DNA from: Styela clava
Lineage: Eukaryota
Direction of reading: 5' to 3'
Assembly: GCF_964204865.1 (NCBI RefSeq)
Contig: NC_135250.1
Span: 26,412,001-26,476,000, forward strand
Length of the DNA stretch: 64,000 bases
Part shown: positions 3,140 to 57,979 of the stretch, piece by piece
How positions within the stretch are numbered: position 1 is the first letter of the stretch
Layout of the letters: each line of letters starts with the position of its first letter
Position numbers and translations under genes: made by a program
The notes under the pieces: model-generated
What the model was told of the DNA's origin: nothing
The model's database searches: none
Seen by the model: the letters and a program-made list of their open reading frames with translations, nothing else

Positions 3140-6100
3140 ATGGATTTACGAGCTTTGACAATATTGTTTTTTGCGATCACGCATATTTCTTCAGGTTAAG
3201 GTACGTGTCTTAGTTTAATTACTTTTTGTAACATAGGAATACTTCTACTACTTGATGGCAGATTTTGCAATAATTGTTGGTCAGTTCAAAAATACTGATC
3301 ATTCAAACAGATGAGCCGTCGCACAAACCAGAAACCATTATCCGAATTTAAACTACGTGTTGGGTTAAGTTCAAATTTTGATATCGAGTTGCAGAGCCAA
3401 CATTAAGTGTAATCACAATTCTTATTTTTTTTTTTAAATCCTAGATGTTTATACTGATGGTAGTTCCAATTATTAAAATTATAGAAAGAATTGTCTCACC
3501 TGCCATGGTGATATCGTGGATATTTCGGGTAATTTTCCAATATTTTTCATTGTTTTCTGTTCTTATAACGTCACTGAATAACTCAGGTTAATAAAATGTT
3601 AGTACTTGTGATGTAATTTTTATTTGCGCCCCAGAAGTATGTGTACCAATATAGAGGGAACTAATTTTGTTTGCCTACTTTACATCAAGTTGTGTAAAAG
3701 GACTGAAACCTATGGGCATGGGGTATATTCACTTGGCTAACACAGACAATACCGAACTCGTAATAGAACTAAAATAAGTAAAATCGAAACAAAATTACGA
3801 CCTAACCATAACCGAACTCGTAATAGAACTAAAATAAGTAAAATCGAAACAAAATTACGACCTAACCATAACCTGGTACACACACTATAAGAGTACCGTT
3901 TTCTTTAACATTTCAATTACAGTCGTTGGAATGGATAGTTTGGTTACACACATCGGAAAACCTAAAAAATATATTTGATAAGTTTTCTTTGACATTAGAA
4001 GATAGAGTGATTTCGAACATTTTAAACTCAGAATTGATTTCACAAAATGATTATAGATTGTAGCTGACCACAAGTCAAAGACATTACTGTGATGTACTTT
4101 GACCAGAGTAGGACCTAATCAGACTGTCGTAATCCAACTATCATAGCAAGGCAAAACAAATCATTATTTATCGTTCCAACAAAACCAAATGAATTGAAAG
4201 AGCGATTTGAACATCAGTCGCAAATAGCAAGATAACAATACTTCACAAACTTTCTTTGTTATTTTAATTCGTACGCGACAATTTCTACATATATGTTGTA
4301 ATTTTGCAAGTCACTTCCCCAATGATAGGCATAAATAAATAGATATTTTCTTGAACATTACTTCCTATTTATAGAACCGTGGAAAAGCGAATGTATTGAT
4401 GGATTCAAACTTCTATTTTTCCACGAAACGAAAAATTACACTGAAGCCAAATCAGCTTGTGAATCTGCGGGAAGTTATCTCGTCAAAGTTGATAATCAAA
4501 AAATAACTGACGTGATAAACGATGTACTCAAGTGAGTTGCATTCACCGTTTACGAGAACAAAACATTTTATTTTTATAGTCAATTAATTTTTCTCCTCAA
4601 TAGTGCTATTTTTCATGTATTTTGGACTAAATCGGATCGGTGGATATATTCCAAAATACCGATATATTTGCTATATAGGACACGTTTTCATTTTAACGTG
4701 AGGTAGTTTACATAGGATTTGAATGAGACAATATATGATAACGCACATGCAAAACATTGATAAGAATAAGCTTCACTGTTTTATGTGGATATATCCTGCC
4801 AATTATTCAGAAAACTTGTGCTCTCTTATAGGTATTGCAAGAGCTTCCAGGACATATATTTGATCTTCGTGCCTTGTTCACGTGTACGATGTTAATTCAA
4901 ATCATATTTAAATTCCAAGCTATAGTTGGTCAATTTGCGTTTACACTTATTTTTCGTGTGATAATTATTTTAATTTCAACCTATTCAGAAACAATCTATT
5001 GAGAGAACAATTTTTCATTGGAGGGAACGACATAGCCAAAGACGGAGACTGGAAATGGCAGGACGGGACTGACGTAATAATGAGAGGAGGAGAAGGATAT
5101 CAAAACTGGTTAGTTATTAATAGATTTTTTAGGATTTTCAAACTTTCATGACGAATAAAGGTAATGGAGAAAAAGAACATCTCATGTCAAAATATCAAAA
5201 ATTTCATAGCCAATTATTAGCAACCTTTTTGTGACTATGTGTAATTATTGTTTATTAAGCTTTTTGTTTATTTCTTCTTTTTTAATTCAGGAGGTCCGGA
5301 GAACCAAATAGTGGAGGAGAGGGAAATGAGGATTGTTTGGTTGTTGGTCTGGAAGGCAATGATTGGGTAGATTATACATGCGAAAGAAGACTTTATTTTA
5401 TATGTCAAAAAGATGATGAAATATATCAGATATTGTAGTTCCTTCATACAATTTTCAAATATGAAAAGTCACCTTTTTGGTTTAATAATTCTATCAAATA
5501 TATACACCGAGTGCCGTTGTAAAAATATCTAGTGAAAAATAAGATTTCAAATGCCATAAAAAATAGAATTTCATACAATAATCATTGTTGTTATTTTTAA
5601 GATATTTATATTGTCGTTATGCACGTGGTATAACTTTAATAAAATCTAATCTTTGATGTACAATATCATTAAAACAGAGTTCCAGGGTCCTTTTCTGGAA
5701 ATTCAAAGTACAGGTCAAACTCAGATGACTTGTACTAAGACCAAGTGTAACAAGGGTACTAATGTTGAATGGTATACGAGTTTCGTGATACCAACAGATC
5801 CTAGCAATCGTGTTTATCAAACAAAGCAATCTGGATCAGCAATATTACATCTACAAAACGCAGATATATCTTATGCAGGGAACTACTCCTGTTGGTCTTG
5901 GGTTAACGGTGTTAAAAAGGGAAGAAATAAAATTGAATATGAAGGTAACATTGATATAAAATTGTTGGCTGTTTATTCCCGTTTTAATTGAAACTGGCTG
6001 ATTGAGATCTCATATTCTAAAGCCCTATGCACGAGACTTGTTCCATCACTCGGCTACAGTAACGATCAGCCCATACACGCAAATTTGTAAACTAGGACAT

Positions 6101-7055
6101 TTAGTAATCCCGTTGTATAAGGACCAGGTTAGGATTAGGCAATAATTTTATTCCCATTTTCCTTGATTTAGTTCTATTACGAGTTCGGGGACTGTCTCTG
6201 TTAGCCAAGTGAATACACCCCCTGACTATAGGTTTCAGTTCCTTCACACATTCTAATGTAAAATATTCGAACAAAATTTGTTACCTCCATATTAGTACAC
6301 ATTTATACTACTGGAGCGCCTTCTAATTGTCACTATTAATTAGTCTAATATAAATAATGACGTATGGAACGGAAGAAAAATAAACACACAAAGCTCACGA
6401 CAAAGTAGTATCAAATCTTTTACAATACCGGCAGTCTTCTTTATCAAAAAACTTCCTACTTAGCTGACCACCAGATCTCTGATATACGATCGTGAAATCG
6501 GCGCATGGTGCGCACTCTTTAATTTTGATGACGAAATCACATAAAACTTAAAGGTGGAAAAAAAAATTACAGAGCTCACGGAATTTTAATAGTAATAAAA
6601 AGTAATCGCCTTACAGCAAAAACAACATTTATTAACCACTCCAAATTTTAAAGCAATTGATCGAGTGATAAAGGAGAATGACAATTTTGTCACAAAAATA
6701 GCGACAAAGAAAAGAAGAATACAAGCAACATCCAGAATTTTCACAAAAAAAGTCCATGGGTCAACTTTGTGCTCAATGTCCACGCAGAAATCACGAAATG
6801 CGACTCATATTTTACTTTTGATGTATTCTATATCTTTTCTATCACAGAAAAGATTGTCAATTCCAATTAACCTTCAGACATTAAGCTTTCATTCATTTTT
6901 CAAGTAGTGCATCTTCCTTTACATTCGCTAACCAACTACATTATTTTATCAGTTGAGGGAACTCCAACAATTAACCATATTCCGAATTACACGTGCAACT
7001 CCAGTTTATTAATCTCGTGGGAACCTCACAAAAATGCAGTTGGATTTCCTCACAA
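3140..7055 (+). pseudogene. Truncated long-form paralog (copy 1): SP, CTL, Ig and half FN3; pseudogene, or possibly a secreted CTL-only lectin
   Basis: Exons 3140-3200, 4375-4531, 4989-5108, 5291-5412, 5678-5944, 6953-7055 are homologous to copy 3. Lesions: CAA>TAA at 3197-3199 at the end of the signal-peptide exon; donor GT>AT at 5413 (read-through stop 5436-5438); all downstream exons removed by a breakpoint at ~7712. Confidence 0.8.
3625..3885. repeat. Related MITE subfamily copy with an internal perfect 60-bp tandem duplication (3751-3810 = 3811-3870)
   Basis: Direct reading. Related copies at ~16057-16242, ~6120-6320, ~19635-19847 and ~54919-55120. Confidence 0.7.
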
Positions 7056-8290
7056 GTGAGATTATTTTAATGGTCCAATACTTACTATCCTCGTTATTTA
7101 CATTTGATCCGAGTCAATTTTTGTGCTTTTTTTGGAGCAAAATATTTTGGGCTTTAGTTTCAGTATTTTAGTAGATTGTCATAATCAAAGTCGCGACTTG
7201 AGATTACCTAACAAAATTATATGAGAAAGCGATTGCGTATAAAATGATATACGGGATATTCTGATTTTTCCTCTTTTAATTTCGCTTTTAACCGTTATTT
7301 CTTATGAGCAATGTAAACATGAATATGCGTATTTTAGGATGCGTCATTGACGTTTTTTCATAGTTTGGTCAGGTAATATTGTTTTTGTTTGTAGTTTTAA
7401 GTGAATGTATAACATTCGAAATATGACTTGGGCTTCCGGGTAACGATGAAGTTGTCTAATCTGATACCTTTATTGTTGTGTCTTATTTTGCAACCTTTCA
7501 TATTAAAGGAATATATAGCAATTTAGCAAAGTTTCTTTTGTTAAAATTGAAAGCGTAAAAATTTATTAGAAAAAATATAGCAGCAGAGCTCAAGCATTCT
7601 TGCCGATACCTTTCGACTCGTATTAAAAGAGTTAGTCAAACTTAATGGTAAGTTTCACAAGGTTGAAAAATTTGTTTTTAAATAAGGGACACCCTAAAGC
7701 CGTAGAATAGCATTAGAAAAAAAAGCAATAGAATAGCAACTTATAGCAGAGGGGTCATGCAATTAACGATGCATAGGCTAGAAAGTCTCATCGTTTAAAT
7801 AAGTTGGTTGCCGCCGATCTAAGTATAATCTCAATTATCGTGACGCACTTGTTTTGCCGAAGGCTGCCTTTGATCAAAATGCCTTTGAATAGTAGTAGGA
7901 TTGTGAGCTAAATATCATGATTTTTCTTACTCAATTTTTTTTCAAATCGATAAAAAACTAAAGCTCTACCTACCTCTGGCTTTTCTAGCTTCAATTTCAT
8001 TTTCCAGGATGTGTTGTTCGATGATATCGCTTTCGCAAAATATGTGTCAAAAAATCATCACTGTCTTTCTTTGATTGTCCGCAAACAGAATTCAAAATAT
8101 TATCAAAAATTTAGATGTATATCTCAATATTAAGTATAATTTTTTATAAAATAGGTTTATCAAATACTCTGATATCGCATGGTGGTCGCAAGATGATTGC
8201 GTATGCGAGATGATTGCGTATTTATTACACTTCACCAATGGCATGATTGCGCACTCAAGACATGGTCTGTTATTCCTGGATTCGCAATTC

Positions 8291-8526
8291 GGTGCTCCCG
8301 AAGTATGCAAACCAAGATGACGGACATCGGAACGTAACATGGGTAACAGGTTAGGGTTGGGCGATAATTTTTTCTCAATTTTCCCTATTTTAGTCCTATT
8401 ATCAGTTTGAAGACTAGCCAAGAGCCTTCCGTATTATTTATACCTAAAATTATGGCCTAACCCTAACTCAGTACACATATTACATTCCGATGTCCGCCAT
8501 CTTGGTTCGCATACTTCGAGAGCCCC
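8291..8526. mobile_element. MITE with long TIRs containing CAAGATGGCGG and GGTTAGGGTT (reference copy of an abundant family)
   Basis: TIR ends GGTGCTCCCGAAGTATG / CATACTTCGAGAGCCCC. 8-bp TSD CGCAATTC at 8283-8290 and 8527-8534. Empty site TTCGCAATTCTATAC at ~31322. Confidence 0.85.
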
Positions 8527-9583
8527 CGCAATTCTATACAAATGCCGTAGCCATATTTAACTAAAGAATAAAGCGATTTATATTCGGTTTTTAGAATTTT
8601 ATGGAAAGGAAAGTTGGTGGAAAGTCGTTATAATCCTTCTAGTGTGGTCATTTTAAAAATTTACCATTATAGCACAAATTGATGACACGTATATTCTGAC
8701 TCCTGACTATCGATCCATGAGGAAATTATCCATGAAGAAATTGTTATTCCGATCTATTGACACTACTCAATATTCATTCGTTTATGCCTGATTCACGTTT
8801 AATAAAAGGTCGATTTGCAATAAAGTTAAGCGACAATAGCGTATACGCATTTCCCGGTATTCTTGCTAACATATTTTGTTGATTTAATAGTATATGTAAC
8901 TCATAGAGTGAACTGTAGGTGAATAGATGAAAACAAAAGAATTTAACTCAGATTCACAGCCGCAAATAATATGGCACATGGGTAGTCAGAATAGAGTCAC
9001 GAGTTAAATTAATTTGAAACGTGGATTCCGATTTGTCAGTTTTTGTTTTGGTTGGCATATTGAATCATTTAAGAAAAAGTATTCACAGTTGCACAGAGTA
9101 TTGCCAATTTGAAGAGTTGTTTAATTTTTCACATGATAAATTAGTAAACACGTTGTGGTAGGGCATGTGGGCGTCTGCTACTTCCCTTAAATGAATTGAT
9201 GACAGGTTAGACTATCAATTTAGATTTTAGAATCGCATAGATGCAACTTGCACACATCTCGTTGTACGATTATTACCTTGTTACGAAGATGTAGTTAGAT
9301 TAGAAGGGAAACATTTTTTAAATTTTTGAGTAGTGCTTTTTCTGTCAGTCAAAACGATCTAATGAGTTTCTCCACATATTTCGTAAACAATTTATAATCG
9401 CTGCTTAATCTACGATTTAGATGCTAGTGGCACCTATGGGATTTTAAAATTGAATATATATTGACTGCATTTTTTACATATTTTGTTACTCTTTTATGTG
9501 CTTCTATCCTTCTATCATACGCTACAATGCATTTATAAGTCGTTAGGAATATTTAAGATTGAAACTCTTTATCGGAATACAAG

Positions 9584-9644
9584 ATGAATTTAGGAGACTT
9601 GGCGATTTTGTTTTTTTCGATCACGCATATATCTATAGGTCTAG
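9584..9644 (+). pseudogene. Orphan signal-peptide exon of a short-type paralog (copy 2)
   Basis: MNLGDLAILFFSITHISIGL + G|GTACGT. The exon and flanks (7748-10555) closely match 30791-36776, but homology stops at ~10555 and no CTL exons follow. Confidence 0.75.
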
Positions 9645-10190
9645 GTACGTATATTTTTTTAATTACTTTTCTACTACTCAATGAAAATTTTGGCAAAAAT
9701 AGTCAGTTTAAAGATACTAATCGAACGGATGAGCCGTCGAACAAATATTTCGTCCGTGAATACCGAAAACCATTATTCGAATTTAAACTACGTGTTGGGT
9801 TAAGTTTATCTTTTAATATCGATTAGCAGAGGCAACATTCAGTGTAATCACATTTCTTGTTTGTTTTAAATCGTAAATTTTTATACTGGTGGTAGTTCCA
9901 ATTATTAAAATTAAAACAAAATAGTTTTACCTGTCATGGTGATATCGTGATTATTTCGAATAAGTTTTCAATATTTGTTTATTGTTTTCTGTTCTTATCA
10001 CTGAATAACGCAGGTTAAAAAATGTTCTTACTTTTGATATAATGTTTTTTTTTAGTTTTTTAAATGGATTGAATAATTGGTTACAATCATTTTCCAAAAA
10101 ACCCAAAAAATATACTGCATATACTTTTCTTGGCAATAAGAGATATTGTAGTGTAAAACCTTGCTGTGGTGGCATAAGTTTACAACAATC

Positions 10191-10309
10191 TTGTAAACTG
10201 CTTGTCTGAGGAACTCTGATTTCGGTCAGACGAAACGCAAGCAGTTTACAACAATCTTGTAAACTGCTCGTCTGAGGAAGTCTGATTTTGGTCAGACGAA
10301 ACGTTACAG
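10191..10309 (+). ncRNA. Tandem minimal type-I hammerhead ribozyme motifs (Penelope/retrozyme-like), 66-bp unit
   Basis: Unit 2: CTGAGGA(10272-10278)-A-GTCTGA-ttttgg-TCAGAC-GAAA-CG-TT^ACAG, with a perfect 6-bp stem II and the palindromic ACGT mini stem III. Unit 1 (core at 10206) has a 15-bp stem I (TTGTAAACTGCTTGT/GCAAGCAGTTTACAA) but lacks the cleavage triplet. Confidence 0.65.
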
Positions 10310-10559
10310 AAATATATTTGTGTTAGTGTGCAGCAGGACTCTTGAATTGTAATAGTTTAGCTTGAAAAATAGGTTAATTAAAGAATTCGTTGGGATTGCA
10401 AAAAATTAGTTTGGGAACGAGACTTATCATTTTCCACTTTTGTAACACTTTAAATACTCTCCATAAAATGTAAGTTTGACCCGCCAGTTTGAGTGGGCAA
10501 ATTTTCTGGCACCTGGTCTAAAAACCTTGCCCACCTCTGAGCTAGTAGTAGGCTTTTGA

Positions 10560-15549: not shown

Positions 15550-18500
15550 ATGAACTTGAGAGTTTTGGCAATATTGTTATACGCGATCACGCATGTTTCT
15601 TCAGGTCAAGGTACGTATTTTATTTTAATTATTTTTGTAACACTGATAACACTGATAAGAGGAATACTTCTACTACTTGATGGCAAATTTCGAAAAAATT
15701 GTCGGTCATTTATAAAAATTGCTCATTCGAGCGTATGAGTCGTCACATAAACATTTCCTCCGCGAATACCAGAAACTAGTATCCGAATCTAAACTACGTG
15801 TTGCGTTAGGATCATATTTTGATATGAGTTGCAGAGCCAACATTGAGTGTAATCACACTTTTGATTTGTTTTCAATCTTAAATGTTTATACTGGTGCTAG
15901 TTCCAATTATCAAAATTAAAAAAAAGAATTGTTTCATCTGCCATGGTGATTTTGTGATTATTTTGAGTAATTTTCCAATATTTATTGTTTTCTGTTCTTA
16001 TAACGTGAGTAAATAACTCCGATTAAAAAATGTTAGTATTTGTGATATATTGTTTTTGGCGCCAGAGAAGTGTGTGTACCAATATGGAGATAACTAACTT
16101 TGTTTGCCTACTTAACATCAAGTTGTGTAAAAGGCTAAAATCCATGGGCATGAGGTATAATCACCTAGCTAACACAGACAGTCCCGAACAGTCCGGGAAA
16201 ATCAAAATAAAATTTTGGCCTAACCCTAACCTGGTACACACACTACAAGAGTACCGTTTTCTTTAACATTTTAAGCACAGTCATTGGAATGGATAGTTTA
16301 GTTACAATCATTCTCGACACCTAAAAATATATTTGAAATGTTTTCCTTGGCATTAAGAGATAGAGTGATCTAAAACTTTGAACTCAGAGATAATTTCACA
16401 AAATGATTATAGATTCTTGCTTGACCACAAGTCAAAATTATTGACTTGTTGACGTTTCGTTTGAACAAAGCAGAACTTTATCAGACAGCCATATGTCAAT
16501 TATCATAGCAAAGCAAGACAAAACATTATTTATCGTTCCAACAAAACCAAATGAATTGAAAGAGCGATTTGAACATCAGTCGCAAATAGCAAGATAACAA
16601 TACTTCAAAAACTTTCTTTGTTATTTTAATTCGTACGCGACAATTTCTACATATATGTTGTAATTTTGCAAGTCACTTCCCCAATAATAGACATAAATGA
16701 ATAGATGTTTTCTTGAACATTACTTTCTATTTATAGAACCGTGGAGAAGCGAATGTATTGATGGATTCAAACTTCTATTTTTCCACGAAACGAAAAATTA
16801 CACTGAAGCAAAATCAGCTTGTGAATCTGCGGGAAGTTATCTCGTCAAAGTTGATAATCAAAAAATAACTGACGTGATAAATGATGTACTCAGGTGAGTT
16901 GCATTCACCGTTTACGAGAACAAAACATTTTATTTTTATAGTCAATTAATTCTTCTCCTCAATAGTGCTATTTTTCATGTATTTTGGACTAAATCGGATC
17001 GGTGGATATATTCCAAAATACCGATATATTTGCTATATAGGACACGTTTTCATTTTAACGTGAGGTAGTTACATAGGATTTGAATGAGCCGTGATATGAT
17101 AACGCACATGCAAAACATTGATAAGAATAAGCTCCACTGTTTTATGTGGATATATTCTGCCAATTATTCAGAAAACTTGTGCTCTCTTATAGGTATTGCA
17201 GGAGCTTTCAGGCCATATATTCCATCTTCGTGCCTTGTTCACGTGCACGATGTTAACTCAAATCATATTTAAATTCCAAGCTATAGTTGGTCAATTTGCG
17301 TTTACACTTATTTTTCGTGTAATAATTATTTTAATTTCAACCTATTCAGAAACAATCTATTCAGCGAAACATTTTTCACGGGAGGGAACGACATAGCTAA
17401 TGAAGGTGACTGGAAATGGCAGGACGATACTGACGTAATAAGGAGAGGAGAGGAAGGATATCAAAACTGGTTAGCTATCAACATATTCTCAAAGCTTTTT
17501 GAACTTCCATGCCAAATAAAATTATGGAGTAAAAAAATTGATATCAAAATACAAAAAATCTCTTAGCCAATTATTGGCAACCTCATTGTAGCTATGTGCA
17601 ACAAAACTTTGAGTTGTCAGTTCATCTTTTCTTTTTTTGATGCAGGGGGGCTACAGAACCAAACGCGGAAAATGAGGATTGTTTGGTTGTTGTTCAGGAT
17701 GATTTTGTTTGGAGAGATTATAAGTGCGAGGAAAAACGTAATTTTATTTGCCAAAAAGGTGATGAAATAGATCAGATGTCGTAGCTCCCTCATAAATCTT
17801 GTCGAATTTCACAAAAACAAATAATTTTATAACGAAAATATCTGGTTTTGTAGCACTAAAATAAAGTTATGATTCCCCAATATATAATATACACGATAAT
17901 TCATGTTTAGCATCAAATCATAATACAGAAGCTTTATATTATTTCTGCAAAACAACTAATAAGCCATAAGTACAGTAAAATTTATATACGAACCTCATGT
18001 ACCCTAGTATATGTTTTAGTTTGAAATATACCACCAGTTTTTAATATGAAAAGTCATCACCTCCTTGAATTGATAGTTCTATCAAATATATCAAGGGTGG
18101 CCAACCTGCTTTCGACCGCGATCGACTAAGTTCTTCAAATTAGCTCTCGTTCGACTAATCGGTAATAAAGGCATAAACAAAAATGTATGAATACTGGATA
18201 CGCAGATAACCGCACACACGCATACAAAAATTCCACAGCTTCCAATAAGCTCGGATCTGCCGGCGCATTCTCAGAGAAATTGCAACAAAAATTTCCCCTT
18301 TTAATTTTTTCATATTCCATTGAATTTGTTAATTTGATTATTTAATTGTACCCGGAGTAAATGTTTCATCATTTATTTTAAATTTATTCAAATCCTACAA
18401 TTCAGATCTAGGGCCTGTCTACTTTTTAGTCGTAAGTGTTTTCAATTCCAAAATAAACCTTGAAAAGTATCCATGTATTATCTAAAAAGCGAATAATGAA

Positions 18501-21500
18501 CATTTTCGAACCATAAATGTTACATGACTGCTTAAACTTCATTATCTAATTTACAATTAATTTAAATGTGATTCTGTGCTCGCTTGCAATTAGAAAAAAA
18601 GGGCATTCTGTTGCCACTGCTACCGTTTCGAATTAAATTTATCACACTACTCTTGGAGTGAGACAATAACTTTCGCACAGTGCAGAAATTATTGTAGAAT
18701 CGTTTGTCAAGGCACACAATATTCCGCAAGTTTATTTCTAAAACTTGGCAGTAGTGAAACTTTTGTTACGTGATATTATACTCCATTGGACTTGTCCATA
18801 CCCAATCAGGGTACTGCATGTGTATATCGTATTTTGCGCATGTACAGTACCATATTCTTCCTGTTTTAAAACACACAACAGGCACTGTATGAAACCGGTT
18901 CAAGGCAATTTTTTGGGGTATGTTATTAAATTTATTCAACGTCAGACGCGATCGACTACTCGAGACGTGGCGATCGACCGGTCGATCGCGATCAACGTGT
19001 TGGCCACTCATGAAATATATAAACCGACGGCCGCGGTGAAGGTACCTAGTGAGTGAGTTGATTTAAAATGCTACCCAAAAAAGAATTTTATGCAATATTC
19101 ATTGTTGGTATTTTTAGGTTATTTATATGGTCGTCATGCACGTGGTATAACTTCAATAAAATCTAATCTTTGATGTACAATATCATTAAAAACAGAGTTC
19201 CAGGGTCCTTTTCTGGAAATTCAAAGTACAGGTCAAACTCAGATGACTTGTACTAAGACCATGTGTAACAAGGGTACTAATGTTGAATGGTATACGAGTT
19301 TCGTGATACCAACAGATCCTAGCAAGCGTGTTTATCAAACAAAGCAATCTGGATCAGCAATATTACATCTACAAAACGCAGATATATCAGATGCAGGAAA
19401 CTACTTCTGTTGGTCTTGGGTTAACGGTGTTAAACAAGGAGGAAACAAAATTGAATATGAAGGTAACATTGATATAAAATTGTTGGCTGTTTATTCCCGT
19501 TTTAATTGAAACTGTCTGATTGAGATCTCATATTCTAAAGCCCTATGCAAGAGACATGTTCCATCACTCGGCTACAGTAGCGATCAGCTCATACACGCAG
19601 TTTCTAGACTAGGACATTTAGTAATCCCGTTGTATAAGTACCAGGTTAGGATTAAGCAATAATTTTATTCCCATTTTCCCTGATTTAGTTCTGTTACGAG
19701 TTCGGGGACTGTCTCTGTTAACCAAGTGAATACACCCGCTGACTATAGGTTTCAGTTCCTTCACACATCCTAATGTAAAATAATCGAACAAAATTTGTTA
19801 CCACTATATTGGTATATATACTACTACATATATACTACTGGAGCGCCAAACATTTTCAATTGTCACTATTGATTAGTCGAATATAAATAATGACGTACGA
19901 AACAGAAGAGCAATACCTACATATACATATAGACACAAAATTCACGACAAAGTAGTATCTCATCTTTTACAATACCGGCAGTCTTTCTTATCAAAATACT
20001 TCCTACTTAACTGACCAACGGATCTCTGATATACGATCGTCAAATCGGCGCATGGTGCGCTCTCTTTAATTTTGTTGACGAAATCACATAAAACTTCAAG
20101 GTTAAAAAAAAAAATAATAGAGCTCATGGATAATAAAAAGTAATCGCTTTACAGCAAAAACAACATTTATTAACCCTCCAAATTTTAAAGCAATTTATCG
20201 AGTGATAAAGAAGAATGACAATTTTGTCACATAAATAGCGACAAAAAAAAAGAAGAATACAAGCAACATCCAGAATTTTTACAAAAAAAGTCCATGGGTC
20301 AACTTTGTGCTCAATGTCCACGCAGAAATCACGAAATGCGACTCATATTTTACTTTCGATGTATTCTAGGTTTGTTCTATCACAGAAAAGATTGTCAATT
20401 CCAATTAACCTTCAGACATTAAGCTTTCATTCATTTTTCAAATAGTGCATCTTCCTTTACATTCGCTAACCAACTACATTATTTTATCAGTTGAGGGAAC
20501 TCCAACAATTAACCATATTCCGAATTACACGTGCAACTCCAGTTTGTTAATCTCGTGGGAACCTCACAAAAATGCAGTTGGATTTCCTCACAAGTGAGAT
20601 TATTTTAATGGTCCAATACTTACTATCCTTGTTATTTACATTTAATCTGGATCAATTTTTGTGCTTTTTTTCGAGCAAAATATTTTGGGCTTTAGTTTCA
20701 GTATTGTCATAATCAAAGTCGCGACTTGAGATTACCTAACAAAATTATATGTGAAAGCGATTGCGTATAAAATTATATACGGGATATTCAGATTTTTCCT
20801 CTTTTAATTTCGCTTTTAACAGTTATTTCTAATGAGCAATGTAAACATGAATATGCGTATTTTAGGATGCGTCATTGAAGTTTTTTCATAGTTTGGTCAG
20901 GTAATACTGTTTTTGTTTGTAGTTATATGTGAATGTATAACATTCGAAATAAGACTTTGATTTCCGGGTTACGATGAAGTTTTATAGTCTGATACCTTTA
21001 TTGTTTCGTATTATTTTGCAGCATTTCATAAGAAATTTACAGCAATTTAACAAAATTTTTCTTTGATAAAATCAGAGGCGTAAGAATTGATTAGAAAAAA
21101 TATAGCTGAAGCGTTCAAGCATTCTTGCCGATACCTTCCGACTCTTATTAAATGAGTGGTAATTAAGGTTGAAAAATTGTTTTGAAGCGAGGGACACCCT
21201 AGATCCGTAAAATAGCAAGTAATTGCTCGTTCGGACTATATCAGAAAAACGATAGTTTTTGAATAACTTATAATAATGTTCACTGTGTTCAATTTCGTGC
21301 TACTCTTTGATTTTTTTTTTTTTTAGAATTTCAACAAGATCATGGATTAATAAAGTAAAAACAAAATGGGTCACACCACTGAAACCCCAGCCACAGTCGA
21401 CATTGATAAATAATTTAGATTCCGATACAACATATAAACTACGTGTAAGAAATATTTATTTTGACCCTAAAAATAGCCGACCGAATTAGACTAGATTCGA

Positions 21501-24500
21501 CAATAACAAGTAAAAAATGACTCAACATATTTCCACAAATGTTGCACCGTGTGGTACAATGCAATTGGAAGTTGGCAGATAACCAAAGTGGCAAATTTTT
21601 TTGAAATACTAGAATTTGGGCCAAAACGGTTATTCTCAGAAAGCCCGCGGAGAAATATGAAAAAAAAACGTAAAAGCAATTGGATGTTGATGGACATTTT
21701 CATTTTCAACAACTAAAATATTTAAATTTTGATTTTTTTGATCTCAACAAAATAGTAATCCATAATTCCATATGTATCAAATCAGAAAATAAAATGTTTT
21801 TTGAAGTAAAAAAAATGATTTCGATATTTTACTCTAGAATATTATAATTTATGCACTAGGCAAAGTGTTAAAAAAGATTAATAATTTTTTTCAGATTAGA
21901 GCATGCTTATCAAAATTTGTGTGTCCAGAAATGATCAATAATCGTTTGCTTGCACGAACAATCGTAAAACCAGGAGGAAAAGCTTTAAGCGTAAAGTCAG
22001 CTTTCATTAAACAAAGTGAGGAAAATGAAACCTGCGTTATATCATGGGATATAGTTAATGAAGAAAGCATGGAATTGTATACAGTGGTAAGTCAATAATT
22101 CACCTCTATTGTTTATTTACTCTCTGTTTCGGTGCAACAAACGATTTATTTGTACATTAATACCCATATTCTAACATAGTTCAAAAATCAGCTTACGCTA
22201 AATTCAAAAATGTGTAAAGTGTAATTGTGAGGTATAAACGGAATCCACGTTAAACCTAGGTGTAAAAAATTGGTGATTTCAAATCATAATAATATCAATA
22301 CTCTTAAGAAATGCAGTACGACGCAATTATGACTAACCTTATTTTGAGGGATAAGTAATGAAATTTCAAAACAGATCTAAAATAAGATTATTTTGCAACA
22401 TATTGCTGAGGCATGAAATATGAAAATTTGCGAATTGAAAAATTATTAAGTATCTAAATTCTATGTAAAATGTAAAACAAAATATTATATAAGATTTTTT
22501 GTTCCATTAAAAATAACAAAAAAATAATTCTATCGAATATACAAATCTGTATGTGATACATCGATCATACTTCAGGAATTGGTTTTGAATTCCATTCTGG
22601 TCACAACGCGGTCTTCTGAAATACAAAATGTAGACTCAAACATATTAAATATGACATCAGCAACAGAGTATCAGTTTCAACCAAAGCCAAATCGGGAATA
22701 CTTTGCGTCCGTGGCAATCTTCAGTTGCGCCGGATCCAGTAAATCTTTGCGAGTGCATGGTGCATGTAGAGGAAGTTCGAAAGGTAAATAAAGTCGTTGT
22801 CGATTTCTATCTCTATTTCTGTGAATATGACTGTGTTTAGCGTATTGAATATACATTGAGTGTCTTATGATAGTCTTCTCGTGGAACTGCTATATAATAT
22901 TTCGATACCACGCAAAAATTCATTGTAATTTATAGCAAGAACCAGAAGTATTACCAGCAATCATAGTTAATTTCTATAAAAATGTAAATTAAGTTTATCT
23001 AGTTTTGTAAACGTACATTTAACTGGCAATCAAGTATATTACCATCCCAATATAATAAATAAAATATTTAAATATTTATTTGATGATAATTTTAGGCATT
23101 CCCGTAGCATGTGAACCAAGATGGCGGACACCTGAACATAGTATGTGTACCAGGTTAAGGTTTGGTCATAATTTTATTCCAATTTTCCTCATTTTAATTC
23201 TATAACGAGTTCGGGGCCCAGCCAAGTGACTCCCGTAGTAATTGTACCTGAAATTATGGTCTAACCATAACCTGGTACACAAACTAAGTTCCGGTGGCCG
23301 CCATCTTGGTTCACATACTACGGAAGTACCTAGTTTTCTATACAATATAGCCCCTTGTATTATTTATATTTATTCTCCTTGAACAAATTCTAGTCTTGGC
23401 AATTATTCACTTTCAGCTCCAACAATGGTTCATCCTCCTAAAATTGTTGGAGATTCAGGGATCAGCAAGAGTGGCGAAATAAATATTACGATACAAATGC
23501 CTTATGAAAGTAATGGTCTTATTAGGTGAGATCGAAAGTTTATCAAACAAAACAGCAATTCTCGAATATATGAAAACGAAGGTCACGAATCTCATACCCG
23601 TACGATAAGATCTGAGAGTATTGATTTTGCTGAAAAGAAATTGTCGTACACGCGTGACAGATTCAGAAAATATCGAATTTTCCAGTAAATCAAAATTAAA
23701 TAGCAAAACTTTGGTTGAAAAAATTGTCTTTTATATGACTGATAGCTTTTTGTTTGTTAACATAGAAATGGTACAACACAATTTACATGTAAAACACAAT
23801 GTTTTTTGCCTCCTCAATTATTTCAATCACTGATATTTTGTAGAAACAGCGCATTGCAGATCCGTTATGTTATCACATAGTCTAACCAAATTATCCCAAT
23901 CAGCCATTTTGGCCAGGATATCAGATTTTCGAGTTCTTGTATTCTGATGTTTCAGGTCATGTGATATACGACTATAAATTGCCAAATATCTTGAACTTTG
24001 ATTTTAATTGGGCCAACAAATTGGATTTGATATACTTTACTTTGCAGTTGCATATTCGTAAATGTTGACATGGACGTCTCTGAAACAAGCACTGAATTTA
24101 CAATGGATGATTTGATTACCTTCAACAGCACAGCGGATGGGGAAAAATACATCGCACTGGCAATTGAGGTTGCGAGGTAAATTTAAATGCAAAAATATTG
24201 CCACTTGATAGTCAACCATTTTACTTACCTGAGTTATTCATTCTTTTTAATGAAAAATTTCAATTTGATATCGGCAAATTGTGTCACAAATATTCATGAT
24301 GCCATTCTGAATTTATGTCTTTCAGTCACTACTTCGATTCCTATTCGATTTAAATTCATATCAGTGGCGCGCAATATGTTATATTTAAGTATATTCAGAA
24401 TTGCTTATCTTGTTCAGTAATAGAAAATTGGAACTTGGAATTCTTGAATTCCAACTTGAATTTTGTTTCCAGACAAATTAAAATTTTGACTCTAATGACT

Positions 24501-35251: not shown

Positions 35252-35640
35252 CCTAATGACCGCTGGTGTTCCTGGGTCATTTTGACACCCCTTTTTTTAA
35301 TATTTCACCAACCAAAAATGCCAAAGACATCATTAATGTGTCTTTAAAAAGCTTATTTTCGTCGCTTTCCACTAAAACGCGCCTATATTACGTAGCGCAA
35401 ATGTGTATGGTAAGAAAAGAGAAATTTCAAAAAATTTCGAGAAAAAGTTTCTCACTTTTAACGCGGTGGTCGACACGTGATTGATATGCGAGAGAAAGAG
35501 TTTTCTTTTAGAAGAGCTTTACGTCACCTTCAAAATAAAACAAAAGTGGGATTTGTAAGTGAAGTGATATTCGTTTTATCGAAGAGCATTTGATCGCGTG
35601 CTGTCTGGTATCTTTGTTTGTTTATTATGAGCCGGAGAAC
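35252..35640. mobile_element. piggyBac-like end fragment inserted upstream of copy 4
   Basis: Starts TTAA|CCTAATGACCG..GGGTCATTTTGACACCC. Absent from the otherwise matching region upstream of copy 2 (~9408). No right end found. Confidence 0.45.
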
Positions 35641-36422
35641 GCTAGTGGCATCTATGGGATTTTAAAATTGAATATATATTGACTGCATTTTTTACATATT
35701 TTGTTACTCTTGAAGTGCATTTTATGTGCTTCTATCCTTCTATTCTTCTATCCTACGCTACAATGCATTCATAAGTCGTTAGGAATATTTAAGATTGAAA
35801 CTCTTTATCGGAATACAAGATGAATTTAGAAGATTTGGCGATTTTGTTTTTTGCGATCATGCATATATCTACAGGTCAAGGTACGTATATTATTTTAGTT
35901 ACCTTTCTACTACTCAATGAAAATTTTGGCAAAAATAGTCAGTTTAAAGATACTAATCGAACGGATGAGCCGTCGAACAAATATTTCGTCCGTGAATACC
36001 GAAAACCATTATTCGAATTTAAACTACGTGTTGGATTAAGTTTATCTTTTAATATCGATTAGCAGAGGCAACATTAAGTGTAATCACATTTCTTGTTTGT
36101 TTTAAATCGTAAATTTTTATACTGGTGGTAGTTCCAATTATTAAAATTAAAACAAAATAATTTTACCTGTCATGGTGATATCGTGATTATTTCGAATAAG
36201 TTTTCAATATTTGTTTATTGTTTTCTGTTCTTATCACTACATAACGCAAGTTAAAAAATGTTCTTACTTTTGATCTAATGTTTTTTTTAGTTTTTTAAAT
36301 GGAATGAATAATTTGGTTACAATCATTTTCCAAAAAACCCAAAAAATATACTGCATATACTTTCGTTGGCAATAAGAGATATGGCGAAAACCTTGCTGTG
36401 GTGGCATAAGTTTACAACAATC

Positions 36423-36527
36423 TTGTAAACTGCTTGTCTGAGGAACTCTGAGTTCGGTCAGACGAAACGCAAGCAGTTTACAACAATCTTGTAAACTGCT
36501 TGTCTGAGGAAGTCACGGAACGTTACA
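36423..36527 (+). ncRNA. Paralogous tandem hammerhead motif pair in intron 1 of copy 4 (second unit damaged)
   Basis: Same 66-bp repeat, with CTGAGGA cores at 36438 and 36504. Unit 2 has lost stem II (CTGAGGAAGTCACGGAACGTTACAG). Confidence 0.5.
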
Positions 36528-39500: not shown

Positions 39501-39700
39501 TCATCGTATTTGATGAAACAAATTGTCAACGTAACAAACATCATTAATTGCGTCAATGTATGAACCAGAACCAAATCACGAGTTCTGGGCTTCGGTACAA
39601 AAATTGTATCGCAATAGTCCACCCATGAAAACTAATTGGTTCTTGCATTGGTAATTTAAAAAAGTAAGAGGAATATTGACTACCAGTTGCTAGGTAATTG

Positions 39701-39936
39701 GGCGTTCCAGTTGAATGCGAATCAAGATGGCGGACACCGGAACGTAGCATGTCTACCAGTTTAGGGTTGGGACATAATTTTATTCCAATTCTCCTTCATT
39801 TAGTTATAATACGATAAAGGTCTCTAGCAAACTGAATCCCGTATTATTTGTACCTGAAATTACGGCCCAACCCTAACCTGGTACACATACCACGTTCCGG
39901 TGACCGCCATCTTGGTTTGCATACTGCACGAGTGCT
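39701..39936. mobile_element. MITE, same family
   Basis: CAAGATGGCGGACACCGGAACGTAG and the inverted CCGCCATCTTG arm, with TTAGGGTT / AACCCTAACC. Confidence 0.75.
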
Positions 39937-41659
39937 GTACTTCCAGCTGAAATCTTTCATAACAAAGCTATTTTTACAATATAAACTGCAGCATTTACAA
40001 AAAGCAACAGATTCACTTAAATGAAAATTTTGCAGTGAAGAACTAACTGGAAATATTAGTAAAATCCTTTAGTATAGAAGCGTGATATACTTTGATTGCG
40101 TTCTCAACTTTTTATTTCACGTATATTTCAGAAAAAACATCGTTCAACTTTGACACTTTGAGTTTTGTGATCGGTTTCATTAGTCCTCTCCTGTTTCTTC
40201 TCATTTCAATAATGTGTATCATCCGACTGAAACAAAAGTTAAACAAATCGAAAGAGTAAGTTTGCACATTTAGGTAATCATTAATTTTGAGAGGTAAATT
40301 TAATTACGCAACATAGTAGCATAATACTTATTATTCATATCAAATCAAATTATATGAATAATGTAATTGTCAATGCAAATTGCTTTTAAGACTAGAACGA
40401 TTGCGTTTTTTATGTTGTTGTAGTAATTACACAGAAACTGTGTTATTCTCATTCCTAGATCTCCAATTGCAACGGACCATAACTACGAAACCATATCCAA
40501 TAAAGGTATGGAACATGCTGAAAATTTATCGACATTTTTTAAAAGATATGATATTTTATGCATTGATTTTTTTTAAATATTACCAATATATTAACACTAA
40601 ACTGTATTGATAAACTAATTATTTTGTTTAATTAAATTGATAGAATATAATACACGAACAAAATAATGATGTTGTACTCAAAAATGTAATGTGTTTTTAC
40701 CTCATCCTAATATTGGTTATATTATATTTTGACAGCACCAAATCCAAACCACCACTCTCAAATCTCGGGTTCAAATATTCTTCAAGAAACAGCTGGCTAC
40801 GAGCAACCACTTCCTTTAACAAGGATTCAAATCAATGTGGAATCAGCCTACGAACCGTACAATGCTTGAATTTGATATGAAGTTAATATACTGATTGTGC
40901 AAGAATTAATTAAAGTTTTGTCAATACCTATGTTCAACAACAACTCATTTTGATTTGAATAGATTTTCAGTTAAATTAGGGTTTAATTTCATTTTTTTAT
41001 GTAAATGTTTACTTATATATTATTTTAAACTTGCAATGAAATTTTATCAAAAAATCCATAATTTCCAAAATTGTTTCTTTCTTTTCAAAAAACAAATTTT
41101 TTGAAACACATCAAGTAAAGTAAAATAATTAATAACACGATAAAGAAAATAAATTACAATTTACATTTTTGATCAGCAAAAAAAATTTCCGATTCTAAAA
41201 ATGGGTGCACGCGTATTATCCGTATCAGGGCATTTTCCCATACAATCCTTAGGATAAAAACTAAAAAATATATGAATCTTAGAATATAGCAGTTAGGTCT
41301 CACGAAACAAATGAAAACACAAATTTAAATAAATTCATTTTGGTATATTATTTTCAAACATATTTATATATATGTGAATATTATTTTGAAAAAATCTCGA
41401 AATGCCTCTTCAAAGTACAGAAGGACCAACTTGAAATCTGTAAGCGTCAGCTGAATATTTTCGTCTTTTGGTTTGATTTTAACTGTAAATCTTTGTATTA
41501 GTTTGTTTATCATGAATACTTTATTACATAAAGTTGAGTTTTGTTATTATATTATGGTAATGTTATTATGGTTGCCTTAGTTGGGATTTAAAAGTGCTTG
41601 TCATTTCAACGAATGAGATCAATTGTTTTTATATGGTTATGCAGGTAAAAGATTTATGA

Positions 41660-41886
41660 TAACCCTGAAGTATGTGAACCAAGTTGGCAGACACCGGAAT
41701 GTAGTATATGTACCAGGTTTAGCCAAAATTTCAGGTACAAATACTACGAGAATCACTTGGCTATTCCCCGAACTCGTAGAAGAACTAAAATAAGAAGAAT
41801 TGGAATAAAAATATGGCCTACCCAACGCTGGTACATATACCACGTTCCAGTGTCTGCCATCTTGATTAACATACTTTTGGAGCGCT
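41660..41886. mobile_element. MITE, same family
   Basis: GAAGTATGTGAACCAAG left arm and GCCATCTTG..CATACTTTTGGAGCGC right arm. Confidence 0.7.
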
Positions 41887-44742: not shown

Positions 44743-46344
44743 AACCATTTCAAGAAATGCGTCGGTGAGTTCGAACTTTTATTTTTCACCGATACCAAAA
44801 GAACTTGCAAAGAGGCAAAGATGTCTGCGAAAATCTCTGAGGATACTTGGCAAAAGTCGATAATCAAAAAATGGCCGATGTCATTAACACAACAATTGAG
44901 TGAGTTGATTACGATTTACTTGAATTTAATTCAATTAATATTTGTTACCCAACTTTTCTTGAAGCGAAGCCCTGTATCCTGAAGTGAATGTGAAATATAC
45001 TTGAGAAAACAGTCGCAAGTAACCTCTGGTTAGTGATATTAATAAAACTCTAGAAATTGAATAACAATATTTCTGGGTGATAGTCCCAGTCCCATGCTCA
45101 TCAGTTTAAATAAATTTGACTAGGAAGTATATTCATTCCTACATACCGACATGCGTATTGTATATTATTGAACACACAATGAACCTTTGGGCCGTTTTGT
45201 TATATGGTGGTTGTTGTTGTTGTTGTTGGTTTTCTACTTGTTGTTTTTATAGTTGATATGGAAATTTCGCTTTGGTTATTAGGTACTGGACCAATTAATC
45301 TAAAAATGTCAGTGATTAAAGATTGTTATTGTTGCTGGAAGGCAATTACTTTTATATATTTGTTTAATTTCTGACTTATTTTGTGATTTATTCATCAAAA
45401 TTAAACATTGCGCACAGTTTGGTTAATTTGCAATTGCATTACATCAATCTGGTGGTCTGTGAATTGGGGAATATTTTGATACCGATACGGTGAAAGATTG
45501 TATACCAAGCGTTGTTCTTTTGTTTTACGTCATCTAATGTGAACTCGGGGTTTTATCAGGTAGGCTCAGCAGTCAAAAAGGAATTAACCTTGTTTTTTTC
45601 TTACTACAATCGACCCTTTTTCAGACCGATTCATTGCCGGGCTCCAGTTCCGTTTCGGTTATTGTCCATACGTACGAAATGTTAACATTTGGGAATAATT
45701 TTTAATTTCATTCCTGAATGAATTTTGTAATAGAACCAAAGGTCTTACTTAATCTGAATAACTTATATTTTAGAATCAATTTTGAAAGAAATTCCAACTA
45801 CATCGGAGGGAACGATATTGCCAAAGAAAAGGGTTTGGAAATGGCAGGACGGTACCGAAGTGACAATGATTGGAGAAGAAGGATATCAAAACTGGTTCTT
45901 CTTTCAAGGTTTATTTATTTGATGATATATTTCTATTAATATTCACATTTTTTTGTGTACCACCGTAGTATGTGCACCAAGATGGCGGGCACTGTCACCG
46001 CCCTAAATAAAAAGAAATCACAAGACCCAAAAAAGTTAACATGTTTCTGTTTGCTATAATGTTGTGCTTTTTTCTCATACGCACCGAAAGACTTGGCATA
46101 CTTCAAACAGTTTTCTCATAAATTTTTTGGAAGTTCAGTAAGTAGTTTGTGCGTTTGGAACAAGATATGTTAAACCTGCGACATGGTATATATATAATAT
46201 ATTTCAACTAGTTTCTATTTTCTTCAAGAAAATTCAATCAACCAAAGGACAGAGGCGACGAAGACTGTTTACTGGTTTGAAGAGAATCATATCAATGGGT
46301 TGAAAGCAGTTGTGACGAAAAGTTGAAATACATATTCCAGATGG
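44743..46344 (+). pseudogene. C-type lectin domain pseudogene (copy 5), three exons
   Basis: Exon relics 44743-44899, 45774-45894, ~46229-46344 are homologous to the CTL exons (KCVGEFELLFF..GYLAKVDNQK; YIGGNDIAKE..WQDGT..GYQNW; QPK..EDCLLV*..WVESSC). They carry frameshifts and in-frame TGA stops. Confidence 0.8.
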
Positions 46345-48810
46345 GTAAGTTGAATATATAACTATACCTCACCTATAATGAGATCAAATTACGTTCGATT
46401 GACGTTTTAATTATTGATATATTCTCATATATTTGCATAAGAATGTATATTTTAATTTGAACTAAATTTAATGAGTTTTTAGGATTTTTATCAATAAATA
46501 CAAATTATTATAAAAAGACGAAAGCTTTTAAAACTCTACGTTTTAATATTACAGCAAATCAAATAACCTCTGCAACTCAAGCTTACTAAAATTATGAAAG
46601 CCTCATGTCGAAGCATTTAGATTTCCTCACAAGTATTTTTAATTTTAACTAAACTTTACAAGATTTTAAATAACATTGCTGGTAGCATATATTGTATTGT
46701 ATTTTGAGCAGGATTGATGTAACCACCCTATCTGAAGAGACGAATAAAGAAATTTGAATTAACCCATTGCCTGAGAAGGAACAATCAACTGCAATTCATG
46801 ACTTGGCACTGTGCTGAATATAAAGTAAAAGTGAGGAATTCATATACTTGACCTCAAACAACCAATTGTTTTGATCAAATGCTTTTAATTTGCAAGGAAA
46901 AAAACTAGACTTAAAATGAAAATAGTTGACATGCATGCTGCCTATGCAAAAATGTTGATTTATTTTTATTAAATCATCACATTTTAATCAAATCAAAGTT
47001 TTGAATATTGATGCCAGTTGGAAAATCTTACAAACTTTAAAATCATTTTAAGTTTGAATTAGATAAAAATTAAACCTAAAAATCATATTAAATACATCGA
47101 TTATTTAGATAACAGCATGTTGGACTGAGTCTGAATGTAAATCTAATTCATCTGTCAGCAAAAAGTAGGTCCTGCAAGTAAAAACAATAATTCAACCGCT
47201 GATTAACAATCAAACTTTGTCACAAATTAACAATCAAACTTTGTCTCAAGAGGATCCATAAAGATCAAGTATAATGTAGCCCTCAAGATGAATCAATCAT
47301 GTGATCTGAAATATATTTTATAATAATATTTTATAATTTGCTGCATTTTATATTTGCGTCCGAAACAAATGTCTTACCTATGTCTGGTATATTTTCATAA
47401 TTGTGATCGATGGTTTACCTATGAAACAACCTAATATAAATTATACTCAGTTATTTCAAGAAATTGTGCTGAAAAAATAGGTTTCTATTTCATCCGTGTA
47501 TATGTATTTCTTTATTTGTATCCAAATTTGTTTCCCTTTCATCCTTGATTTTACAGAAATTTTTGTTAGTTTTATTTTTGCCTTCAGGTTCTGACAACTA
47601 TATTTATTTAGATATAAATAAATAACCAATATGAGTATTTATATTGGAAAAAATGAAATTATTTCCGCATCGGTTCGATTTAGATAAGGGCATTGTTTTT
47701 AGAGAACTATCATATTGTTCTATATCTCTAAAAACTAACAAATACACATTACATATACATATAGACCTACATTACATATAAAATTACTTTTCGTCAAAAG
47801 TATTTCGACAATAATTCTCTCTTTTGCATTCAAATCTAAAACTTAAAATAGTTTCTTGAAAAAAGTAATGGCTAAACTAGATTTTTCATCATTCTACATA
47901 TTCCAAACAAGTTAGATTGGTGCAGAATGTCTTTAATCAAATGAATAGGGAAATTATTTGATTCCAATTGCTCGTTTAGTACGTCACCTCTAAGCTCGAA
48001 TATAACTATCAGGAAATTATTCCAGCCAATGATTTCCGCCAATTTTCAAAAGTAAATTAATAAATTCATTCAATAAATATAAGACCGAAAGTACTTCATC
48101 GACCATGTAATAGATATAACTTTACCAATGACCTAAAATTTTGCATTTTTGTAAATGAATTTGACCAAAAATCACATCCACCCTAAGTGGACAGTATATG
48201 ATCAAAATATCTTTGGCCCAAAATCAGTAAAACTTGTTTTACACTGCACTAGAAATAACTAAGAAAAACACAAGAATTATTATGGGAAGTTTGATGAATT
48301 GTTCTTGATGTTGTTGATATTGTTAAATCATTTCAAGCAGTCAGTAGTTAAAACAAGGTATTTCGTTGAAAAATATTAAAAAAATTAAAAGATTTTTTTT
48401 TATTTTTGGGGCTTCCGTGTTTAAACTTGTTCCCCCAAATTGACGACGACTCGTCTATTTGTTGCTGCAAAATTTGGCCATTTGTCGACTAACTGTTGTC
48501 ATTATGTTATGTTTAGATCGCGCATATATTTCAGTACAGTTTGTTACTTCATGTTCAAATAAATATTTATTCCTCAGAAACCAATCGGCATATTGATCAA
48601 TTATATTAAATGATTAACAATATATATTATGATGACGTGCTTTGTTACGTCCAAAATAGGTTAAAATTCCGCTTATATAGTTGACTCCATCTTCCTTATC
48701 ACGGCTAGTCCGGTAATAAAATTAAAATTATTTTTACGATACAAATAGACGATCAGGCTTTTAATGCAAAGTTAAAAATTGGCTGTGAGTTCTTGTGTGA
48801 TAATACTCAA

Positions 48811-57800: not shown

Positions 57801-57979
57801 CGAATGATCAATATTTTTCATCCAATAGACAATTTTTGCAAAATTTGCCTTCAAGTAGTAGAAGTATTCCGAAGTTATCAGTGTTACACAAAGTAATTGA
57901 ATAAAGTTAGACGCTTACCTTGACCTGAAGAAATATGCGTAATCGCGAAAAACAAAATTGTCAAAGCTGGTAAATTCAT
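48811..57979 (-). CDS. Type-I membrane receptor, long form (copy 6), inverted paralog of copy 3; 15 exons, 703 aa
   Basis: Exons (high-low): 57979-57919, 56951-56795, 56286-56167, 56016-55895, 55561-55301, 54409-54307, 53723-53606, 53169-52981, 52529-52322, 51984-51876, 51322-51194, 51046-50897, 50286-50210, 49964-49794, 48947-48811. Sum 2112 nt, open frame, same intron positions and phases as copy 3. CTL has EPN..ENC..WVD. Tail NYETI/TTYENV/GYEHP/FYENY. Confidence 0.85.
48970..49374. mobile_element. hAT MITE in the last intron of copy 6
   Basis: Ends TAGGGATGGACA / TGCCCAGCTCTA, subterminal (TTCGA)n repeats, perfect 8-bp TSD CATTCTAC at 48962-48969 and 49375-49382. Confidence 0.85.

Follow-up and report, generated by a model that had tools for sequence, protein, structure and literature searches.

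Here we describe a 64,000-nucleotide stretch of the Styela clava genome (G000:C1:26412001-26476000, hereafter the window), which is AT-rich (GC ~32%), lacks long open reading frames (ORFs) and, when compared with itself, shows several paralogous blocks. It holds six paralogous units, two of them intact genes (copies B and C), one doubtful (D) and three dead (A, E and F), and all six paralogs listed in an initial annotation of this stretch are present. The intact copies are predicted to encode type I membrane proteins in which an N-terminal signal peptide is followed by a lectin domain of the C type (CTLD), an immunoglobulin (Ig) domain, a stalk of fibronectin type III (FN3) type, a transmembrane (TM) segment and a tail of ~70 amino acids (aa), a topology, with its N-terminal CTLD on an Ig/FN3 stalk, that the initial annotation had recognised. 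New here is that the whole predicted ectodomain is homologous to that of three tandem genes for receptor protein tyrosine phosphatases (RPTPs) resembling RPTP alpha and epsilon. Sequence comparison thus places the tail-type members of the family, B and C among them, as phosphatase-less paralogs of these lectin-tipped enzymes, with unrelated TM and cytoplasmic parts (Table 1).

A search for AG/GT splice sites in copy B found a single set of 15 exons, the translation of which agrees residue for residue with the 703-aa protein P0001 (XP_077971861.1, annotated 'uncharacterized protein LOC120335085 [Styela clava]'). Projection of these exons onto copy C, which lies on the opposite strand, gave an intact paralog of the same length, with exon lengths that differ from those of B by +9, -6, -3, -3 and -3 nt together with two additional terminal codons, all five indels being multiples of three. 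Each gene therefore keeps 15 exons, 28 canonical splice sites and a 703-codon open frame, and the two intact 703-aa long forms of the initial annotation are upheld. Spliced models of C and D were used for the dN/dS calculation, the phylogenetic tree and the ORF check, and searches were made with exons or database proteins. Between B and C, dN is 0.114 and dS 0.235, the latter about equal to the intron divergence (K ~0.25), and the resulting dN/dS (omega) of 0.48 (Fisher p 2.6e-7) indicates purifying selection on both genes.

The lectin head is matched by the Lectin_C profile at aa 39-150 of P0001 above the gathering threshold (69.9 bits against a cut-off of 22.6), as well as in 14 of 14 rows of an alignment (A1) that combines 12 models of tail type with the phosphatase gene in two versions. 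A PDB profile search placed the CTLD nearest to PLA2R (E 3e-21), MRC2, CLEC4F and the carbohydrate-recognition domains (CRDs) of collectins, and in Foldseek comparisons of an AlphaFold2 (AF2) model of P0001 the head resembled the CRDs of SRCL and aggrecan (TMt 0.77-0.81). In copies A, B and C the EPN motif of sugar/Ca site 2 and the following glutamate are kept, and the WND motif has another residue in place of its asparagine, reading WRD in B and WVD in both A and C, which leaves the set of site-2 ligands incomplete; other family members carry QPN with W[IV]D. The Ig exon gave I-set and Ig_3 matches at E 7e-5 to 3e-3, always under the gathering scores, with Ig profiles matching 13 of the 14 rows and the core SDAGNYFC visible; AF2 confidence is low in this region (aa 153-255). 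The fn3 profile matched 11 of 14 rows (best E 1e-4), and at its gathering cut-off of 25 bits it matched P0005 (29.9 bits) and gave no match to P0001 itself. In Foldseek, aa 240-600 aligned at a probability of 1.0 with FN3 domains arranged in tandem in neogenin, contactins, RPTP sigma/delta/mu and CD45, and an ESM-Atlas look-up of aa 448-603 gave a lead (score 0.91), which Pfam did not confirm, to Fn3_PTPRU and the fourth FN3 domain of Dep-1, representing the membrane-proximal FN3 of RPTPs. The TM segment follows at ~613-632.

The relationship to receptor phosphatases emerged from an exhaustive HMMER search of 1.84 billion representatives, for which the longest exon of the window (the Ig exon, 19174-19506) served as query. 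It returned P0001 (98% identity) and also S. clava LOC120335088 (P0015/P0060, 1231/1306 aa), a protein with Lectin_C, Ig, fn3 and two protein tyrosine phosphatase (PTP) domains; beyond four S. clava proteins it yielded only generic multi-Ig proteins. Residues 7-608 of P0001 align with residues 6-612 of P0060 at 42% identity (E 5e-157), and the TM segment and tail do not align. Against tail-type proteins of the main family cluster, the RPTP ectodomain is 58-62% identical, with values of 74-83% in the CTLD and 38-42% in the proximal stalk. A tblastn search for RPTP exons in the 142 kb upstream of the window recovered three tandem complete CTLD-Ig-FN3-TM-PTP-PTP exon sets, lying 20-120 kb away on the same chromosome, and the catalytic part of these enzymes is nearest to the D1-D2 domains of RPTP alpha (E 9e-125) and epsilon (E 6e-117). 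By contrast with this neighbouring array, tblastn with the cytoplasmic part of P0060 found no PTP exon in the window, and Pfam found no Y_phosphatase domain in P0001. We also considered whether one RPTP gene makes both forms through an alternative tail exon, and found no tail-type exon within the RPTP genes. We know of no receptor phosphatase so far described that has a C-type lectin head.

The tails hold four tyrosines within ~70 aa, in an acidic context and without an enzyme, and no PTP or other enzyme exon is present in the window, which bears out the initial description of enzyme-less tails with tyrosine motifs. The family consensus reads HNYETI ... PSYSNVLQETAGYEQ[AP]LP ... VESAYE[QST][PY], its second half being repeated one to three times, and conservation of the module extends to at least 14 proteins. 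It appears confined to this family in a database search with the P0064 tail, and the tail exon of B has ~47 matches in the genome. In many of the proteins P0064-P0069 and P0074-P0075, which belong to the main cluster at C1 25.2-25.65 Mb, the module [SSSNVLQETAGYEQALP..TKQTQVESAYEQP] is repeated in tandem two or three times, with up to 8 tail tyrosines. A motif scan of the family tails found YxN in nearly all members and YxxP in most, and no immunoreceptor tyrosine-based activation motif (ITAM); an inhibitory (ITIM)-like SAY[ED]QL occurs in three members, none from the window. The tails of B, C and D contain neither ITIM nor ITAM, and their TM segments are free of K, R, D and E. With respect to switch motifs (ITSMs), which the initial annotation had attributed to these tails, the pattern TxYxxV does occur in B (TAYENV) and C (TTYENV), but neither D nor any of the 14 other tail-type members checked has it, and most other members have PSYSNV, a YxN motif, at this position. 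The motif common to the family is YxN. The C-terminus of B is LYENY and that of the neighbouring RPTP is LYSNY, which we take to align with the C-terminal YxN through which RPTP alpha binds Grb2/Src; the LYxNY ending common to B and the RPTP is too short to prove homology.

Based on Ig-exon and tail-exon matches in the genome, the family comprises at least 35-40 loci, all annotated 'uncharacterized', most of which lie at C1 24.85-25.65 Mb and others at 26.29-26.49 Mb and on C2, C3 and C4. NCBIfam offered nothing useful for the family, a literature search found no paper naming these loci by gene ids, and searches for BsCLT and for RPTP, C-type lectin and ascidian in combination returned nothing about this Styela family. 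Word-seeded searches with P0001, the P0064 tail and a family profile found no homologs outside S. clava, though proteomes of other styelids may be missing from the databases covered. In an unrooted maximum-likelihood tree built from the ectodomains, the RPTP is sister to the tail-type protein P0027, inside the family, and B and C share a long branch. Together these comparisons suggest that the window holds a divergent, partly decayed branch of a Styela-restricted family, and with two live units, one doubtful and three dead, they agree with the initial view of a lineage-restricted, tandemly duplicated family undergoing birth and death. Just beyond the end of the window, on the minus strand, lies LOC144425647 (P0073, C1:26476314-26486424), a tail-type protein of 546 aa with a shorter ectodomain; its tail exon recurs, at 91% identity, ~1 kb downstream at 26476314-26476445.

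Table 1. Features of the window and of the upstream phosphatase array (window positions, except where C1 is given).
Feature	Position	Strand	Details
Copy B, intact gene LOC120335085	15550-27120	+	703 aa; all splice sites AG/GT
B exons 1-5	15550-15610, 16737-16893, 17350-17469, 17646-17758, 19196-19462	+	
B exons 6-10	20491-20593, 21327-21444, 21895-22086, 22576-22783, 23417-23525	+	
B exons 11-15	24048-24176, 24937-25089, 25687-25763, 26032-26202, 26987-27120	+	
B C-type lectin domain, exons 2-4	16737-17758	+	Lectin_C match, Foldseek
B Ig-domain exon	19196-19462	+	I-set (E 7e-5) and Ig_3 (E 2e-4) matches under gathering; HMMER
B stalk, exons 6-13	20491-25763	+	two FN3-like domains and membrane-proximal beta-sandwich region, aa 240-603
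B TM exon	26032-26202	+	hydrophobic stretch FLIGFIIPLLFLGITGWII; AF2 helix 611-655; includes juxtamembrane NYETI tyrosine
B tail exon	26987-27120	+	TAYENV (YxN, ITSM-like), GYEQPLP (YxxP), C-terminal LYENY then stop
Copy C, intact paralog	57979-48811	-	703 aa; B exons projected; all sites AG/GT, sole stop terminal
C exons 1-5	57979-57919, 56951-56795, 56286-56167, 56016-55895, 55561-55301	-	
C exons 6-10	54409-54307, 53723-53606, 53169-52981, 52529-52322, 51984-51876	-	
C exons 11-15	51322-51194, 51046-50897, 50286-50210, 49964-49794, 48947-48811	-	
Copy D, short form	35820-40869	+	246-aa ORF, seven AG/GT exons
D exons	35820-35880, 37054-37213, 37451-37546, 38231-38349, 40132-40255, 40459-40505, 40736-40869	+	weak acceptor at 37451-37546
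Copy A, pseudogene, exons 1-6 only	3140-7055 (3140-3200, 4375-4531, 4989-5108, 5291-5412, 5678-5944, 6953-7055)	+	
Copy A nonsense TAA at codon 20	3197-3199	+	CAA in B, C and D
Copy A exon 4 donor lost	5413-5414	+	AT (GT in B and C)
Copy E, pseudogene fragments	44743-46633	+	
E exon 2-like	44743-44899	+	2 stops
E exon 3-like	45785-45894	+	10 nt short (-10 nt frameshift); AG acceptor lost
E exon 4-like	46230-46352	+	
E FN3 scrap	46559-46633	+	
Unit F, solo signal-peptide exon 1	9584-9644	+	ATG and GT donor kept
hAT-like DNA transposon	31350-34390	-	interrupts second copy of segmental duplication; DUF4371 E 5e-4 (weak)
Three tandem complete CTLD-Ig-FN3-TM-PTP-PTP exon sets	C1:26290512-26392085	-	first = LOC120335088/P0060; tblastn

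Older database models of the two intact genes differ from those presented here. For C, the earlier RefSeq model P0063 (709 aa) retains intron 3 and skips the intact CTL exon 4. P0063 is an older-assembly allele of C, with 9 amino-acid differences over ~640 comparable residues, and a 1-nt difference, either a polymorphism or a sequencing error, shifts its final 8 codons and removes the terminal YENY. Similarly, P0005 (XP_039258519.1, the older LOC120335085 model) fuses ~500 aa of another paralog to exons 9-12 of B. The Ig exon of this foreign paralog is 60-66% identical to those of A, B and C, and in the present assembly nothing matches the foreign part more closely than 55-66% at the Ig exon, or above 89% identity anywhere. 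Either the assemblies differ in structure or copy number here, or the earlier one was put together wrongly.

The remaining units are in various states of decay. Homology of copy A to B stops at 7712, and A, with exons 1-6 only, is to be read as a pseudogene rather than as a secreted form because of its codon-20 stop and the loss of its exon 4 donor. Copy D, a short form, can be spliced into an ORF, predicted to encode a signal peptide, a partial CTLD, a TM segment and a tail; its lectin domain is damaged and it has no Ig or FN3 exons. In D the 5' half of exon 3, which would encode the WIGL-type core, is swapped for unrelated sequence, the acceptor is weak and purine-rich, and the EDC cysteine of the lectin domain is changed to Ser; the nearest relative of D is P0073. 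Copy E consists of fragments, and no other family exons were found between unit F and copy B. F itself lies within a block (9423-10548) that matches 35641-36774 at 93%, part of a segmental duplication of 93-95% identity in which 7747-10548 corresponds to 30790-31331 plus 34395-36774. A recent duplication copied the 5' end of D (exon 1 and part of intron 1) between A and B, giving rise to the solo exon F. The hAT-like element has perfect 14-bp terminal inverted repeats (CAGTGGCGGCGCGT), a transposase frame split into four ORF pieces and a GC content of 43% against a background of 32%. As a separate observation, exon 10 of B differs from that of C at 1 of 109 nt (23417-23525 and 51984-51876, respectively) and the flanking introns differ by ~20%, probably the mark of gene conversion over a short tract between these inverted copies. 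Turnover of the locus by duplication, gene conversion and transposon insertion is apparent from these sequence comparisons. Tandem hammerhead ribozymes, a candidate at 10177-10309, found no support, an Rfam scan of the whole window at the gathering threshold giving 0 matches, that region included.

Taking these results together, we lean modestly towards a reading in which the locus encodes Styela-restricted type I lectin-Ig-FN3 receptors that are phosphatase-less paralogs of RPTPs and have phosphotyrosine-docking tails. Tail-type members would probably signal via such docking: the head would bind an extracellular ligand, either glycan or protein, a Src-type kinase would phosphorylate the tail tyrosines, and the phosphorylated tails could dock SH2 adaptors, YxN suiting those of Grb2 type and YxxP those of Crk/Nck type. 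The phosphatase paralogs, whose head is similar, could counteract or modulate this pathway. A number of points weigh against this reading. The canonical Ca/sugar site is incomplete, which makes lectin activity of the heads uncertain; neither the Ig match nor the FN3 match of B itself reaches the Pfam gathering scores; and the AF2 model, built from the 14-row alignment, is poor (mean pLDDT 57) and was used for coarse fold matches only. In addition, phosphorylation and SH2 docking are deduced from short motifs, which are common by chance, and the restriction to Styela is a weak negative since databases may lack other styelids. Finally, the tree, being unrooted, cannot say whether phosphatase was lost or gained, or whether the tail type or the RPTP type came first.

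The locus had originally been interpreted as a diversifying cluster of paired immune receptors with ITSM tails, that is, activating and inhibitory innate receptors of the KIR/LILR or NK-complex lectin type with SLAM-like ITSMs and fast-diversifying heads, which we regard as quite unlikely. A tandem cluster with birth and death would suit such a system, as would the fit of TAYENV and TTYENV to TxYxxV and the genome-wide joining of the same head type to a phosphatase or a tyrosine tail, but the common tail type of B and C, the lack of ITIM and ITAM in B, C and D and their uncharged TM segments speak against pairing, and the 14 other tail-type members checked lack the ITSM-like motif. Nor is diversification of the heads supported. 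CTL exon 4 and FN3 exon 7 show higher nonsynonymous divergence between B and C than the remaining gene (p ~1e-4), an observation in keeping with that proposal, yet dN/dS is 0.48 overall and omega in exon 4 (1.7, p 0.56) is not significant. Comparison of A with B reveals a mosaic: exon 2 and intron 2 diverge by 3%, the stretch made up of intron 3, exon 4 and intron 4 by 22-26%, and everything from exon 5 on by 1-7%; because the divergent block takes in introns 3 and 4, we read it as gene-conversion tracts rather than exon-limited diversification. A genome search for a donor of the odd exon 4 of B matched only C (79%) and A (73%). Positive selection on exon 4 is unproven, given a non-significant omega and equally divergent flanking introns, and across the family few parts are better conserved than the CTLD (60-71% mean pairwise identity). 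None of the tests run supports the paired, ITSM-based or diversifying elements of this interpretation.

A role in non-immune adhesion or developmental recognition (tunic, epithelial, neural or in metamorphosis), or as decoys that regulate the lectin-tipped phosphatases by competing for ligand or by forming heterodimers, with the tail tyrosines of minor importance, is a less probable alternative, which we hold with considerable doubt. The Ig/FN3 stalk recalls adhesion-type RPTPs, neogenin and contactins, the CTLD identity of 74-83% between RPTP and tail-type proteins suggests a shared, possibly endogenous ligand, and the incomplete sugar site is in keeping with such a role. However, even among paralogs with an ectodomain identity of only ~40%, the tyrosines of the tail and the residues around them are conserved, and the module has been tandemly amplified to two or three copies in some members, which argues that the tail matters; furthermore, at least 35-40 copies would be unusual for a developmental adhesion molecule. 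Far less credible, and in our view highly improbable, is that the cluster is decaying and non-functional and that the models which look intact are artefacts of annotation. Of the six units, four are doubtful or broken, and older RefSeq models of B and C are chimeric or mis-spliced, but B and C have kept all 15 exons, 28 canonical sites and 703-codon frames at a dS of 0.235, with dN/dS of 0.48 (p 2.6e-7) and exonic indels that are all multiples of three.

The phosphatase-less receptor reading also admits a stronger version, in itself unlikely, in which the two kinds of protein form an opposing pair: one head type would be mounted either on an RPTP alpha-like phosphatase or on an amplifiable docking tail, both reading the same ligand in innate or self/non-self recognition. 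This proposal is prompted by the 74-83% CTLD identity between the two kinds and by the LYxNY with which both end. If true, it would represent a paired-receptor logic independent of the ITIM/ITAM pairs of vertebrates. In tunicates, which form the sister group to vertebrates, the receptors of innate recognition have been catalogued only poorly. Should both versions read the same ligand, they would offer a natural system for studying how a receptor phosphatase and a docking receptor cooperate, and a candidate lineage-specific recognition system.

Among the systems with which these genes can be compared, LOC120335088 and its two tandem copies resemble the window genes over the whole ectodomain (42% identity to B, 58-62% to the main cluster) and in exon pattern, and differ in that two PTP domains take the place of the ~70-aa tail with tyrosine motifs found in the window genes, the TM segments being unrelated. 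KIR, LILR, Ly49/NKG2, SIRP and SLAM are, like the window family, clustered multigene families that include pseudogenes and have tails with tyrosine motifs; in the window, B and C have one TxYxxV each. However, the paired receptors of NK and myeloid cells are built on ITIM/activating pairs with charged TM segments, neither of which occurs in the window family, where the ITSM is not family-conserved. NK lectins are type II proteins and KIR, LILR and SLAM are Ig-only, whereas the window family carries a CTLD head on a type I protein. Among vertebrate receptors, selectins, layilin, the CD93/thrombomodulin group and the mannose-receptor family are also type I with an N-terminal or extracellular CTLD, but none of these is known to join it to an Ig domain and an RPTP-type FN3 stalk. 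With regard to the cytoplasmic part, vertebrate LAT, NTAL and PAG have short enzyme-less tails with several tyrosines in acidic context, including YxN(V), and almost no ectodomain. The window tails may be regarded as analogous to these adaptors, and to the C-terminal YxN of RPTP alpha, in their YxN/YxxP docking motifs, without sequence homology. Finally, BsCLT of Botryllus schlosseri, compared here by a description that notes no FN3 stalk or tyrosine tail, is likewise a styelid ascidian protein in which a CTLD is joined to an Ig domain (Pancer et al. 1997, as cited in PMC5465252).

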